A stretch of DNA of 64,000 nt from Octopus sinensis (Eukaryota): contig NC_042999.1 in NCBI RefSeq assembly GCF_006345805.1, forward strand, positions 42,160,001 to 42,224,000. The letters are read 5' to 3'. A program made the translations under genes and the position numbers. The first letter of the stretch is position 1, and each line of letters begins with the position of its first letter. The notes under the pieces were generated by a model, which was not told the origin of the DNA, did not search any database, and saw nothing but the letters and a program-made list of their open reading frames with translations. Below are positions 18,383 through 64,000 of this stretch, in pieces.

Positions 18383-19356
18383 AAATATATGTATATATAT
18401 ATAAGTACATATTTATACACAAACACACATACACACACACAAACACACACACACACACACACACACACACACACACGAACACACACACACACACACACAT
18501 ATATATATATATATATATATATATATATATATGTGTATACATATATGTATGTATACCTATACATATATGTATATTTACAAATAAACAAACTGAAAGCCGA
18601 GGAGGCTTTGATGTGGTTTATATTATGTCAACGGAATTGACTGGATGATAAAGTTCAATAAGAAAAAAATAAGAAAGAAAATCACGCACAACAGCCATTA
18701 AATTTGAATATGCATGCGCATGGGCATACGCATGCGCATACGCAAATAGCATGAGCCTCTAGTAACCAAGGACGTCACCTTGGAGCTAGATAATTATGTG
18801 TAATGCATTTAATGTATATATACACATATACTTACATATATATATATATATATATATATATATATATATATATATATATATATATATATATATAAATTTA
18901 AATAATAAGGATAAAAAGTTGATATTAATTTCATTAATAACAATTTAAAACAGTGGCTTAGCATATTGAAAAGAATCTGAAGTTTCAGAAAAAATTATAC
19001 TACTTACATATAAGAGGGACATCCAATATGCTAAATGTAGACTCAATATGGTCTGACCACTAAGAAAGAATTGTTCTCAATATATGTGTATATATATGTA
19101 CGTATATATATACATATATATATGTGTATATATGTGCGTATATATTCATATATATGTGTATAATGTACGTATATATTCATATATATATATATGTGTGTGT
19201 GTGTGTATATATGTACGTATATATATGTGTGTTAGTGTATGTGTGCGTGTATCCAATTTATCTCCGACAAGAAACATCTTATATATACATATATATGTGT
19301 GTGTATGTGTGTGTTTGTGTAAAATCAAAATAAGCAATAAGGATATCCAGAGGTAA

Positions 19357-19443
19357 TGCAATACGATCGTTTCATGCAATTCCATTTAATTGAACAATGC
19401 AATCATTACATCAACTTGAAAAGTAGAGCAATCTTCAGCTGTA
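19357..19443 (-). ncRNA. Type I hammerhead ribozyme motif (left arm)
   Basis: CUGAAGA-UUGC...GCAU-GAAA-C-GAUC-GUA. Stem III is the palindrome ACGATCGT; stem I (UACAG/UUGCA) is partly decayed. Confidence 0.7.
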
Positions 19444-20011
19444 CAAAGACATACAATTTAGTTAAATTTCTATCCTTTTGTTACAATATTCTTCTTAATA
19501 ATCTTTTGAATAACCCTAAACTTTCACTGAATACAATATAGCAAATATTGTTTTAAAGTATTTAACTACAGTGCTACATGATAAGATTTCCCCCTCTTTT
19601 GTTTCATTATCAATAGTCTGCTAATGGGCGATCCTTTAATTATCAGATAACATCTTGTTATAAGTTTTCCCTTACTAAACCTCATGACATTGCTTGTAAT
19701 ATATCTTGATTTTTATGACTTCACCATGTAGAATGTCTGTCTACTCCCTCAAACCTACCCATAACAGATACTATCCTCTGTTTCTCTCAGTCATAAATAT
19801 ACATGGGATTTGATAAACTAATCGATAAATTAAAAATGACCCCATAAAAAAAAATCAGTGACAGGTAGCGTCTTCTTGAAAATTTTAGATACGACTATAC
19901 TGTTGTAGGTACAACATGTCCTTTGTTTATCTCCTTAACTTCTTGGAGATTTTAGGTATAATTATACTAATGTGTCCATCTGTTCTAATGTAACTAAATT
20001 CTATGTCTTTG

Positions 20012-20098
20012 TGCGGCTGAAGATTGCCCTACATTTTAAATTAATGTAATGATTGCATTCTTCAATTAATCGGAATTGCATGAAGCAATCGTACCGCA
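20012..20098 (+). ncRNA. Type I hammerhead ribozyme motif (right arm, A15.1G)
   Basis: Perfect stem I UGCGG/CCGCA, CUGAAGA, stem II UUGC/GCAU, GAAG instead of GAAA, and GUA cleavage triplet. Confidence 0.65.
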
Positions 20099-22400
20099 TT
20101 ACCTCTGGACATTCTTGTTGCTTATTTTGATTTTAATCATATTATTTTGAAATTGTATGGGTAATACCGTACTAAATTCTGGGGCCTCAACTTAAGTACC
20201 ATATTCATCAGGATCTAAATTTTTGCTACTCATCTACCATACCTAAAGTGTATATATATATATATATATATATATATATATATATATACATATAAATATA
20301 CACACCTATGCAGTAGATTATCCCGTGGTGGATCCTGCAGTATTACGGCGTTTCTATAATACATTCTCGTTAAGTAGGATATAGAGGTCGCCACTCGCTA
20401 TTCGTTAACAATACTGCGTCTGTTGCTAATAACATATATATTTGTGTGTGTGAGTGAGTGTGTGTGTGTGTGTGTGTGTGTGTATGTGTGTGTGTGTGCG
20501 TGTGTGTGTGTGTATGTGTGTGTGTGTGTGTGTGTGTGTGTGGTGTGTGTGCGTGTGCGTGTGTGTGTGTGTGTGTCAAATTTGCTGAAATACTGCAGTT
20601 CATCTAAATAATGTTTCTGACAATGGTGAGATCCTACTTGTATCTGTCATCTATTACAAACCGAATGAGCGTGTCAGTACCTTCTGGAGATATATCATTC
20701 ATAGCCGAAAACTATCTGTAAATTGCATTATGTTTGGTGAAGCCAGATAAGCAGAGCACGGTAAAAATAGCCTTAAGAAACACACACACACACACACAGA
20801 GATAAACAAAAACACACACGTATGTGTGTGTTTATATATATATGGTACCTCCATATATATATAACTCTAATATAGTAACTTCATATATGGCTGTGTGTGT
20901 CTGTGTCTGTGTCTGTGTGTATGGCTTCATATCATAGAACTGTTCTATAAGTTAGTATTTAAGGATAATGATTTTGATTGGTTGATTTTCATCTACGCAG
21001 CGAAACTGAACTATCGTTTCTACAGAAATGATGCGGAATGGAATTGATTCCTAAGGAAGAAATCTTGACTCTGAAATTTAGTGATGAAAACTGTAAAGGC
21101 TTTTCATTTACATATTCCGTGTTCTTTGATTGCTTTTCTATATTCATTGAAATCTTTCTAGTTCTAGTTCTGGCCTTTATTTCTTCCTGCCATATGTATG
21201 TGTATGTATATATAATATATATATATATATATATTATATATATATACATACATACATACATACACACACACACACACATATATATATATATATATATATA
21301 CATATATACATATATGTATGTGTATATGTGAGTCTGTGTGTGTGTTTATATATGTATATATATGTATATGTATATATAAATCTGTGTGTATATCTATATA
21401 TATATATATATATATATATATATAGAGAGAGAGAGAGAGAGAGTGAGAGAGAGCTACATACATATATATTTTATATTTGTATATAATGCATATATATATA
21501 TATATGTATGTGTGTATGTACGTACGTACTTATGTATGTATGTATATACGTATGTATGTATTTATGTATGTATGTATGTATGTATGTATGTATGTATACA
21601 TGTATGTATGTATACATGTTTGTATGTATCTAATTTTATTCTTGTTGCTTCAGTTGCGATTAAATACATGTAATTCATTTTTAGAAACATTTATGTACTG
21701 ACGTCAATTGCAGACATACAAACACACGTGCCAGCTTCATGCATATATTCTCATTAAAATCGTCAATAAAATGCGCCATAACACGTTCTACGTTCTGCAA
21801 AGTGAACGTACAGAACACTCCCCACAATGTCAACCCTGATTTAACGTTATTCCTTCTCATAAAATACAAAAGTACAACGATTAAAGTTTAAAAGAAAAAA
21901 GAAGCATTTGAGACCTGAATGAGTCAGAAAATATATTTAATACTATATAACATAACTGTTTTTTGTTTTGTTTTGTTTTATTCTATAAATCCAACAAGGT
22001 TGTAATGGCGTAGGTTTTCAGTCTAAGTTCTGACATTTCATTTTTATTTTTCTCTAATTGTTACGTATCAAGGAATATATTATCTAATATGTCCTTCAGT
22101 TTTGGCGTAATAAAGTGTGATTTGAGGAAGATTGGCTGATATTTCTAACAAATCAAGCGACCGCATAATAGCGCTTTCTCTGACTCATGTAATATTTTCG
22201 TAAAATCTGAGGATATAGTAGCGCAAATAAACATATTGTTAACAATATTAATTGTTACAAGGCAGCGAGCTGGCGGTATGGTTGGCAAACTAGATATAAT
22301 ACTTAGCGGCATTTCGTCCCTTATCACGTCATATGGCGGTGAGCTGGCTGAATAATTAGCACGCCCAGCAAAATGCTTTGCGGTATTCCACTTGTATTTG

Positions 22401-61955: not shown

Positions 61956-62008
61956 TGAGAACGTACGTTTCAAGATTAGTCAAACTCGACATTTCTATCA
62001 TCAGCTCA
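61956..62008 (-). ncRNA. Type I hammerhead ribozyme motif (left arm)
   Basis: UGAG-CUGAUGA-[U-AGA..GUC/GAC..UCU-U]-GAAA-C-GUAC-GUU-CUCA; palindromic stem III ACGTACGT. Confidence 0.72.
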
Positions 62009-62523
62009 GAACTCCCTGGTTTGGATTTGAAAACACTGAAAGTGGGAGCATACCCTTTCGGCTTCTTCTCGCTTCTGAAGATCTGCTCGACACTAACAGT
62101 GCCAACAAACTCAAAAATGCAAGCGAAGAATTTCTGCTCTCCCCTTTCCACCAGCGTGGGTTAAAATCAGTAAACACTATGCTTTTTTCGGTAAAATCCA
62201 AGGCATTATATAGAGAGAGATGAATTATAATTTCAACAATTGAGGGTAAAATTAATTAATTAATCAATTTCACCAATCAATTTCACCAATCAATTGTTGA
62301 AATTATAATTCATCTCTCTCTATATAATGCCTTGGATTTTACCGAAAAAAGCATAGTGTTTACTGATTTTAACCCACGCTGGTGGAAAGGGGAGAGCAGA
62401 AATTCTTCGCTTGCATTTTTGAGTTTGTTGGCACTGTTAGTGTCGAGCAGATCTTCAGAAGCGAGAAGAAGCCGAAAGGGTATGCTCCCACTTTCAGTGT
62501 TTTCAAATCCAACCAGGGAGTTC

Positions 62524-62576
62524 TGAGCTGATGATAGAAATGTCGAGTTTGACTAATCTTGAAACGTACGTTCTCA
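62524..62576 (+). ncRNA. Type I hammerhead ribozyme motif (right arm)
   Basis: Identical core to the left arm; predicted cut after 62572. Confidence 0.72.
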
Positions 62577-64000
62577 AATAACCTTTGCATTTGATTTTTT
62601 AATGTCTAAACTACCCCCATACTTCCGTGAGTTGAATTGAGCAAACACTATATGAGAGGTTTTCTTTATTTAAGTATAGAAAAGTTTTAGAAAAGTTTTT
62701 TTTTTGGCTGCTATTTCTAATGAGTTCAGTATGCGGCAAAGTAATTTATTTTTACTAAGCCCTTTTATATAATGTTAATAATTATATATATATATATATA
62801 CACATGAGTACGCATTAATGAAACATGTATATGTGTATATACATACATATATAGATAATAGATATATTATGCATATATATGTATATATAAATATATATAT
62901 ATATATACATATATATATAAATAAATATATATATATATTTATACATATAATATATATGCATATATATATATATGCATGTGTGTGAGTCCTGTGTAAAAAC
63001 AAATGTACAATATAACATCTACAGATACTATATGTATAAACTTAGGAATATATTTATTTATAAAAGTATGTGTATCTATATTTATATATATATATATATA
63101 TATATATAGAGATAGATAGAGAGAGAGAGAGAGAGAGAGAGAGAGTGAGTGAGAGAGATAGAGAGATAGATAGATAGATCGATAGATAGATAGATAGATA
63201 TATAGATAGATAGATGATATAGATAGATAGATACACACACAAAAACACACACAACACACACACAAACACACACACACACACACACACACACACACACATA
63301 TATATATATATTGTATTGTTGTGTTGGTTTCCTCTGCAAATGAAAACAAAAAGAAAGACTTGGGTCAAAATTGAATGTCTAAACTTTAAAGCAATTTTAT
63401 TTTTAACTCTAACTTGAAAATAATTTTAGAATCTGAAGCAATTAAGGATACAGATCAATACAGTGAATCGAATTTTTTGAACACAGTAGCTTTCAACCTT
63501 TTTGACCGTTATTGATCATAAAATATTTTTAGTAAAATTTATTAATCTGAACGGAAATTATTCTCAAAATAAACATTTTGGACATATAAGAAGCTTGACG
63601 TTATGTGAATTTGTCATATTCATTTCTTTGATCTGAATTAACGAAGTTTTCATCCGTCATTCTTTCTCATACCTTTTCGATTATTCACTCGCTCTTGCTA
63701 AATCGGTCTGCGATGTCTGTGTGTGCGTTCCAGCGGAGGTGGGGGGGGGGGGCATGTGTTTCTATATGCGTGCGTGTATACATGTGCGTATGCTTGTAAG
63801 AGTGTTGATGAATGCAATAATAAGCATATATGCATGAAAATATTCTTATATATACAAATATATATATGTATATATATATATATATATATATATATATAAT
63901 ATATATATATATATATATATATATATACGCATATAGTACGCATATATATATGTCCGTGAGTCTATATATATATATAATATATGTACTTATATATATAGTG

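Follow-up and report, generated by a model that had tools for sequence, protein, structure and literature searches.

Background

Minimal hammerhead ribozymes (min-HHRs) of metazoan Penelope-like retroelements (PLEs) have reportedly been described by Lünse, Weinberg and Breaker in 2017. Such motifs reside in all PLE terminal repeats as well as in thousands of dispersed copies, and pairs of them occur on opposite strands at distances of 100-700 bp (Cervera & de la Peña 2014, PMC4209133). The same study recorded ~1,300 hits of a core variant with a U3-A8 pair in Schistosoma mansoni, and stressed a conserved G10.1-C11.1 pair and an extra nucleotide after A9 as features of minimal hammerheads (PMC4209133). 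Here we analyze 64,000 nucleotides of the Octopus sinensis genome (contig NC_042999.1, positions 42,160,001 to 42,224,000 of the forward strand; hereafter the window), in which four inverted-repeat, or foldback, elements (E1-E4) carry hammerhead motifs facing outward from their arms, and compare these elements, which are probably products of PLE-type insertion, with the systems already described.

The architecture of PLE insertions has been laid out by Arkhipova (2006), Craig et al. (2021, PMC8557442) and Frangieh et al. (2024, PMC11167929). The insertions comprise partial tandems, an inverted 5'-truncated copy and a tail of 30-40 bp at one end only; canonical PLEs have a hammerhead near the 3' end and target microsatellites, especially (TA)n, and the (TA)n targets have been linked to a CX2-5CxxC linker in the enzyme (Craig et al., PMC8557442). 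The PLE enzyme of the anole cuts AT-rich DNA, both strands of which are extendable, and reverse transcription from two internal sites explains the tail; the anole hammerhead needs the protein in order to cleave, and a C3G/G8C exchange rescues cleavage partly (Frangieh et al., PMC11167929). Animal retrozymes have been argued to be non-autonomous PLE derivatives that stem from pseudo-long terminal repeats (pseudo-LTRs) (Li et al. 2026, bioRxiv 10.64898/2026.07.22.740005).

Results

Four foldback elements with outward-facing hammerhead motifs

The first-pass annotation of the window proposed four inverted-repeat structures of a common design, and arm alignments confirmed all of them:

19320-20135: E1 foldback, arms 19320-19468 and 19987-20135, 87% identical, unique spacer of 518 nt
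~30733-31087: E2 foldback, arms of ~177 nt, 82% identical, spacer of 5 nt
46284-47962: E3 foldback, arms of ~840 nt, 91% identical with gaps, 98% over unique parts
61667-62783: E4 foldback, arms 61756-62257 and 62275-62783, 96% identical, perfect core of 223 nt

The hammerhead-sense 3' end of every arm in E1-E4 faces outward. E2 is compact and symmetric, with a total length of 355 bp. The inner 200 nt of E3 are TG-rich, and its perfect arms, which end at 47081 and start at 47115, enclose a loop of 33 nt, while the E4 loop measures 46 nt (62244-62289) and has a 13-nt tandem duplication at its end. The arms of E3 differ by indels and substitutions and those of E4 close to their ends. The arms of E1 and E2 have diverged by 13-18%, core boxes included, which fits neutral decay. 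The motifs, copy by copy, are:

19356-19444, minus strand: E1 left-arm hammerhead; helix I strands 19444-19439 (5') and 19361-19356 (3'); core CUGAAGA 19438-19432; helix II 19431-19374 (U.U plus 3 bp, 50-nt loop); GAA 19373-19371; helix III ACGAUCGU 19370-19363; H17 is A, 19362
20011-20099, plus strand: E1 right-arm decayed copy; core CUGAAGA 20017-20023 intact; GAAA changed to GAAG, 20082-20085
30804-30836, minus strand: E2 left-arm copy; core AUGAUUA 30832-30826; helix II GCGAAAGC (2 bp plus GAAA loop); GAGU instead of GAAA
30981-31013, plus strand: E2 right-arm hammerhead-like motif; helix I UGUC/GACA; core AUGAUUA 30985-30991 with A3-U8; helix II ACGAAAGC 30992-30999 (A.C at 10.1/11.1, then 1 bp); GAA 31000-31002; helix III ACCGGU 31003-31008; H17 is C, 31009
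46331-46371, minus strand: E3 left-arm hammerhead; helix I ACUU/AAGU; core UUGACAA 46367-46361 with U3-A8; helix II 46360-46345 (U.U plus 5 bp, loop ACCA); GAA 46344-46342; helix III ACCGGU 46341-46336; H17 is U, 46335
47877-47917, plus strand: E3 right-arm copy; core 47881-47887; H17 at 47913; core and helices II and III same as in the left copy
61956-62008, minus strand: E4 left-arm hammerhead; helix I UGAG/CUCA; core CUGAUGA 62004-61998; helix II 61997-61972 (U.U, 3 bp, internal loop, 3 bp); GAA 61971-61969; helix III ACGUACGU 61968-61961; H17 is U, 61960
62524-62576, plus strand: E4 right-arm hammerhead, same as the left copy; core 62528-62534; GAA 62561-62563; helix III 62564-62571; H17 is U, 62572; predicted cleavage 62572/62573

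The four cores (CUGAAGA, AUGAUUA, UUGACAA and CUGAUGA) read as had been claimed, with 3-8 pairs C-G in E1, A-U in E2, U-A in E3 and C-G in E4, and so do the palindromic stem III of each family (ACGAUCGU, ACCGGU, ACCGGU and ACGUACGU) and the U.U at 10.1/11.1 in E1, E3 and E4. Helix III of E3 becomes AACCGGUU when A14 and U17 are counted. Three helices surround the core, helix I being open and 3-6 bp long and helix II extending 3-5 bp past the U.U in E1, E3 and E4 and 1-2 bp in E2, where positions 10.1/11.1 are G-C in the left copy only and A.C in the right copy. Position 17 is A, C, U and U in E1 to E4 and never G. The exact conserved core (C3 U4 G5 A6 N7 G8 A9, G12 A13 A14, A15.1-U16.1) is found in the left copy of E1 and in both copies of E4; E3 departs from it by U3-A8 and the right copy of E2 by A3-U8, and the GAAA box is mutated in the right copy of E1 and the left copy of E2.

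The motif is kept in five of the eight arm copies. Two hammerheads had been proposed for each element, which is true of E4, where the copies are identical, and nearly so of E3, in whose right copy one A (1 nt) is deleted from the 3' strand of helix I, but not of E1 and E2, which have GAAG and GAGU, respectively, in one arm. In the right copy of E1 the helix III palindrome is broken and the 6-bp helix I (GUGCGG/CCGCAU) is kept. The CpG-containing states of E1 look ancestral; taking them as such places this 6-bp helix I together with GAAACGAUCGU, which makes the case for E1 stronger. E2, by comparison of its two arms, is a weak case, as a 'good' ancestor would have to be assembled from bases of both.

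E2 and E3 have in common helix III ACCGGU and a 3-8 pair other than C/G. They also have in common, ~15 nt from their 3' ends (31056-31087 in E2; 47932-47962, plus strand, in E3), the string TGCATTTTC followed by a CTT-rich stretch, and TGCAUUUUC likewise occurs in both ~15 nt from the end; E1 has TTGCTTATTTTGA, which is similar to TGCATTTTC. The 3' string of E2 and E3 may be a recognition or initiation motif, or else a sign of family kinship. The distance from the predicted cleavage site to the arm end is 42 nt in E1, 78 nt in E2, 49 nt in E3 and 211 nt in E4. Minimum free energy (MFE) folds of the motifs did not give the hammerhead fold, and cofolding predicted that the palindromes of E3 and E4 pair between molecules.

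Motif frequency and pairing of positions 3 and 8

The window was searched with a descriptor that asked for 3 bp or more in helices I and II, with one mismatch permitted at 10.1/11.1 in the latter, for N3-UGA-N-N8-A in which positions 3 and 8 form a Watson-Crick pair, and for GAA, a palindrome of 6-10 nt from A15.1 to U16.1, and a position 17 other than G. The full descriptor gave four matches (both E4 copies, E3 left and E1 left) against a mean of 0.015 in 200 dinucleotide shuffles. With helix II relaxed to 1 bp, the loosest setting, the right copy of E2 was added, bringing the count to five against 0.083 in the shuffles, so that the motif frequency exceeds that of shuffled sequence at either setting. 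Because the real sequence is palindrome-rich, 23 decoy descriptors with permuted UGA/GAAA boxes were run on the unshuffled window, and each returned 0-1 matches compared with five for the true core. Leaving positions 3 and 8 free returned the same five matches, all inside foldback arms, and a descriptor with one core mismatch revealed no additional decayed copies in the window. The motifs are real hammerhead-type motifs, present above chance. The 3-8 pairing put forward in the first-pass annotation also holds in this unbiased scan, with Watson-Crick pairs in 4/4 families (n = 4 families only), but the A3-U8 version of E2 needs the bases of both arms for a 2-bp helix II.

Local Rfam searches found no hammerhead in the E4 hammerhead region; in that of E3 they matched HH9 with 11.6 bits (threshold 52, E = 3). 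An E-value search of the whole window against Rfam was dominated by microsatellite and hairpin microRNA (miRNA) matches. Two sub-threshold miRNA-precursor matches fall on hairpin centres, MIR7533 on that of E4 (62109-62424, minus strand; 120.6 bits, threshold 230) and mir-2513 on that of E3 (47030-47166, plus strand; 70, threshold 89). These matches reflect long perfect hairpins and not miRNA genes; read-through RNA of E3 and E4 would be predicted to form a strong hairpin, and possibly a source of small RNA. Just past the (TA)n downstream of E3, the string CUGAAGA...GAAACAUGU G (48130-48200, plus strand) was a further candidate; it lacks a helix I and would have G as position 17, and was set aside as a chance match.

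Insertion anatomy and turn-around points

The features at the ends of E3 and E4 are:

46256-46289: (TA)n tract at the left end of E3
47963-47997, plus strand: E3 tail, 35 nt between the end of the right arm and (TA)n, with no left counterpart
47997-48112: (TA)n tract at the E3 tail
61650-61670: (TA)n tract at the left end of E4
62783-62800: (TA)n tract at the right end of E4

The minus strand of E4 holds a 559-nt unit (62276 to 61718) that continues directly into the first 51 nt of a next unit (61717 to 61667). These 51 nt are 100% identical to the unit's own start (62276-62226), and the junction is thus head-to-tail. The plus strand holds an inverted, 5'-truncated copy (62290-62783) that ends 89 nt short of the outer end of the left copy. 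An inverted copy is present in 4/4 elements and a partial tandem in E4; a second sense hammerhead in tandem was found in none of E1-E4. The one-sided tail amounts to 35 nt in E3, 89 nt in E4, perhaps 115 nt in E1 and none in E2. In E1, 115 nt of unique sequence (20136-20250) lie between the right arm and a (TA)19 tract, and may or may not represent a long one-sided tail. Neither the E3 tail nor this E1 candidate has a match within its own element.

Perfect (TA)n adjoins 4/4 ends of E3 (tail included) and E4, compared with 3.7% of window positions that are equally close to such a tract. TA-rich flanks had been proposed for every element, which applies fully to E3 and E4; E2 is set in an imperfect TA/GTAT microsatellite, the left flank of E1 consists of (TG/TA)n repeats, and the (TA)19 on its right begins only 116 nt away.

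The turn-around points of E3 and E4 are still legible. The perfect arms of E4 end on the self-complementary CAATTG (62238-62243 and 62291-62296) and those of E3 on the self-complementary ACATGT (47076-47081 and 47115-47120). Both loops also contain a stutter. In E4, tcaatttcaccaa occurs twice (62264-62289), whereupon the right arm starts with tcaatt; in E3, acacgttatattt is a 12/13 copy of the start of the right arm (turn region 47076-47127). From these junctions we infer that, at the E3 and E4 turns, a single nascent strand may have slipped, snapped back and been copied back, rather than two cDNAs having stopped together.

Coding capacity, enzyme remnants and relatives

No Pfam domain was detected in any open reading frame (ORF) of at least 45 aa within E1-E4, and none encodes a reverse transcriptase (RT) or GIY-YIG domain. 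Without an RT or endonuclease (EN) ORF, E1-E4 can only be non-autonomous or truncated PLE derivatives. Two Penelope-like remnants had been suggested in the window, at 12.4 and 60.4 kb. The former, a supposed RT remnant, has no Pfam match even at E = 10 and was not confirmed; the latter holds a GIY-YIG match:

60408-60785, plus strand: Penelope-like endonuclease remnant, with a CX4CxxC linker (CTNDNCMVC) followed by GIY-YIG (PF01541, E 2.4e-5)

This linker type is that of the Neptune, Nematis and Naiad clades of PLEs, and a possible role in (TA)n recognition has been suggested for it (PMC8557442). The remnant is cut off by microsatellites on both sides. In the protein collection it has a single relative, itself decayed (69%; P0001, from a 2.5-kb Logan contig of SRR11869391). 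The contig is collinear with 60450-61585 at 66-75% identity and ends ~80 bp before E4; it holds no hammerhead and is thus of no help as an empty site or as a PLE 3' end. The same stretch of the window, made up of the EN remnant and ~800 nt downstream, aligns with positions 458-1636 of L001 (Logan contigs of SRR11869385, SRR11869391 and SRR11869394). The collinearity means either that a related species has the orthologous locus or that a longer repeat is present in both sequences.

When each unit was compared with the window by BLAST, the partner arm was the only match. The E4 and E3 hammerheads, used as exact patterns on JGI metagenome contigs, had 0 matches, a 21-kb Argonauta hians locus showed no hammerhead match and no similarity, and the 110-aa ORF of E4, which spans the hammerhead in antisense, had no match in either an identity look-up or a protein search.

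Other contents of the window

The window has a G+C content of 35.5% and is microsatellite-dense, with 71 perfect tracts of (TA)6 or longer making up 3.1% of its bases. Its remaining inverted repeats were considered as ribozyme foldbacks and rejected, being opposite-orientation pairs of a tRNA-derived short interspersed element (SINE) without a hammerhead motif:

14798-15250 and 16944-17361: inverted SINE pair
22403-22785 and 23894-24353: inverted SINE pair
43875-43930 and 44173-44228: inverted SINE pair

A (TA)n/(TG)n microsatellite lies inside each, and tRNA-derived SINEs may be the source of many (TA)n target tracts. Two C-terminal RT fragments of long interspersed elements (LINEs) were also found, one at 1590-2147 on the minus strand (RVT_1 match, E 4.8e-7) and one at 37803-38693 on the plus strand, with 60% identity to a protein of Argonauta hians, the best named relative, and 68% to a protein of metagenome scaffold ERZ23491053. 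A full-length U6 small nuclear RNA (snRNA) gene occupies 29850-29957 on the minus strand (103 bits, E 9e-26, with a TTTTT end, from the Rfam gathering search), ~780 nt from E2. The long ORFs of 6675-8686 are translations of homopolymer and trinucleotide repeats (poly-Ser, poly-His, poly-Ile and poly-Leu), and this region is low-complexity DNA, not genes.

Discussion

A probable PLE-type origin of the foldbacks

The four foldbacks are best read as insertion products of four unrelated, short, non-coding retroelement families of the PLE kind, each with a minimal type I hammerhead, and we put the probability of this at about 0.7. The elements may be 'retrozyme-like' units that are non-autonomous, or else no more than parts of pseudo-LTRs. 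The proposal of the first-pass annotation that these are non-autonomous, (TA)n-associated, hammerhead-bearing insertions is in this respect sustained, given that the elements are non-coding, have their motifs near the outward 3' ends and display the hallmarks of PLE insertion.

The following mechanism can be envisaged. A PLE RT/GIY-YIG enzyme, supplied in trans, would nick AT-rich or (TA)n DNA, and cDNA synthesis would be primed internally, downstream of the hammerhead, on an RNA longer than one unit, either tandem or circular. The nascent cDNA would stutter and snap back at a short self-complementary site (CAATTG in E4, ACATGT in E3), and the enzyme would copy it back to yield a head-to-head palindrome, in which a copy-back strand halting short of the start would leave the one-sided tail. 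The hammerheads would act only as dimers of two sense copies in tandem master transcripts, since a helix III that is loop-less and palindromic requires two sense copies for cleavage. The copies in a foldback lie on opposite strands and so cannot dimerise in one transcript. For this reason the inserted copies appear to be dead ends for ribozyme function. A read-through transcript of a foldback would instead fold into a long hairpin, and E1 and E2 would already be in neutral decay.

Several observations weigh against this origin. No Rfam hammerhead model is significant, the gathering search of the window having given only U6; the models call for a hairpin at helix III, absent here, and minimal hammerhead variants are known to have escaped standard descriptors (PMC4209133). 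Canonical and PLE hammerheads keep G10.1-C11.1, which is replaced by U.U in E1, E3 and E4, and helix II never exceeds 2 bp in either copy of E2. The 89-nt tail of E4 is longer than the published 30-40 bp, and E2 has no tail. The window contains no intact PLE, and the searches made turned up no further copies of the four families. In vitro, both strands of the target can be cleaved and extended, which could give inverted copies without any snap-back, and the hammerhead is dispensable for insertion (PMC11167929).

Competing explanations

How the palindromes formed could be explained differently with the element type unchanged. In two independent target-primed reverse transcriptions, one per strand, a dimeric PLE enzyme would produce cDNAs that meet head to head. 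The anole PLE protein, a predicted dimer, cleaves and extends both strands in vitro (PMC11167929), and two cDNAs that differ in length would be in keeping with the uneven inner ends seen in E1 (518-nt spacer) and E4 (46 nt). Independently truncated cDNAs would, however, hardly be expected to turn within 5-33 nt of perfect symmetry as E2 and E3 do, and the inner ends of E3 and E4 lie on self-complementary hexamers with an adjacent stutter of ~13 nt, as snap-back priming predicts. Dual-strand priming fits E1 and E4 less badly than E2 and E3, and we hold it to be unlikely as the general route. The function of the motifs is a separate matter. They may descend from hammerheads and yet no longer be ribozymes, at least in the variants with U3-A8, A3-U8, U.U or a 2-bp helix II, persisting as an RNA or DNA structure recognised by the PLE machinery or as mere relics. 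Consistent with such a loss, in vitro cleavage by the minimal hammerheads of PLEs is poor (PMC4209133), that of the anole depends on protein and can be dispensed with for insertion (PMC11167929), the Rfam models score none of the motifs, the MFE folds lack the hammerhead fold, and three families have replaced G10.1-C11.1. On the other hand, 3-8 pairing is Watson-Crick in 4/4 families even when left free, G is absent from position 17 and helices I and II persist, as expected of a working core, and a C3G/G8C double mutant retains partial activity (PMC11167929), which together lead us to regard the loss of ribozyme function as a sizeable but still minority prospect.

The remaining explanations would remove the PLE connection altogether or the elements themselves. 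Foldback elements or miniature inverted-repeat transposable elements (MITEs), that is, DNA transposons targeting TA, might have captured hammerhead-like strings, or hold them by coincidence, with no role in mobility. E1-E4 resemble such elements as small whole-length palindromes without an ORF at TA-rich insertion sites, the compact, symmetric, tail-less E2 (355 bp) most of all, and TA duplications are not scorable within (TA)n. Coincidence nevertheless sits poorly with four unrelated arm sequences that share one hammerhead design in the same outward orientation, where the decoys gave 0-1 matches, and the one-sided tails and partial tandem, with the asymmetric ends of E3 and E4, are a misfit for cut-and-paste ends. 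No terminal motif of a known transposase family was seen to be shared by the elements, no transposase is encoded in the window, and we consider a MITE origin improbable. Least credible of all is that the near-perfect palindromes of E3 and E4 are chimeric reads, assembly errors or products of palindrome formation at the DNA level after insertion of a single copy. Arms that are 98-100% identical do invite this suspicion, and structures of this kind trouble assemblies (PMC8557442), but E1 and E2 share the architecture at 13-18% arm divergence, which makes it old and real, the E3 arms differ by indels and substitutions and the E4 arms close to their ends, and one-sided tails are unexpected from read chimeras.

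Implications

For annotation, hairpins of this kind should be labelled as PLE-derived non-autonomous insertions, and not as new foldback transposons or miRNA precursors. For ribozyme biology, the elements offer independent natural examples of a change of identity at positions 3 and 8 with Watson-Crick pairing kept, and a lineage with U.U in place of G10.1-C11.1; if the variants still cleave, nature has provided in them a series of compensatory mutations of the catalytic core. For the mechanism of retroelement insertion, E3 and E4 are young enough for their turn-around and tail junctions to be readable, and these suggest snap-back on a longer-than-unit template. If PLE RTs do copy back on such RNA, retrozyme-type RNA would be tied directly to PLE integration. 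A broader scenario, which for now we offer as speculation and think doubtful, is that octopods have seen a radiation of minimal hammerheads in which the 3-8 pair passed through C-G, U-A and A-U and U.U became established at 10.1/11.1, with E3 and E4 preserving the copy-back junctions of PLE synthesis.

Comparison with known systems

The motifs resemble the min-HHRs of metazoan PLEs in their type I topology, a helix I of 3-6 bp and a palindromic helix III that is formed only in dimers. They do so as well in the extreme sequence diversity between families of one genome, the dispersal of most copies outside a full PLE, the occurrence of opposite-strand pairs a few hundred bp apart and the use of U3-A8 for C3-G8. 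They differ in having U.U at 10.1/11.1 in three families, in a helix III that is a palindrome of 6-8 nt instead of being absent, and in the A3-U8 version of E2 and the octopod host, the former of which goes unmentioned in the study of minimal hammerheads in PLE repeats (PMC4209133).

Animal non-LTR retrozymes (Cervera & de la Peña 2020, PMC7229834; Li et al. 2026, 10.64898/2026.07.22.740005) likewise carry a type I hammerhead on short units that are AT-rich and do not code. Their mobilisation by PLEs via longer-than-unit or circular RNA has been proposed, and the 559-nt unit of E4 with its 51 nt of continuity is a parallel to this. Retrozymes form head-to-tail arrays and circular RNAs, whereas the octopus elements are inverted dimers with one partial tandem junction and are known from DNA alone; their units of ~180 to 840 nt partly exceed the 170-400 nt typical of animal retrozymes. 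From foldback elements and MITEs they are set apart by one-sided tails, a partial tandem, the absence of a shared terminal motif or a scorable target duplication, and a ribozyme design that is conserved across unrelated families.

With PLE insertions, finally, E1-E4 share the inverted truncated copy, the hammerhead near the 3' end, the AT-rich or (TA)n target and a nearby GIY-YIG endonuclease with a CX2-5CxxC linker; the partial tandem recurs in E4, and an extension at one end in E3 (35 nt) and, at greater length, in E4 (89 nt). Unlike in those insertions, the repeats neither contain nor enclose an RT/EN ORF, the inserted sequence being the non-coding part only. The (TA)n bias has been reported mainly for Naiads, which are PLEs without canonical hammerheads. 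In its essentials the system is already described, as regards the minimal hammerheads of PLE repeats, their opposite-strand pairs, the U3-A8 variant, the inverted truncated copies, the tails and the (TA)n bias. The literature searched contained no report of a hammerhead from an octopus or other octopod, and no A3-U8 natural variant, U.U at 10.1/11.1 or reading of turn-around points at the level of junctions. What the octopus locus possibly adds to the known systems is therefore an octopod host, the A3-U8 pair, U.U at 10.1/11.1, and turn-around junctions that suggest copy-back synthesis.

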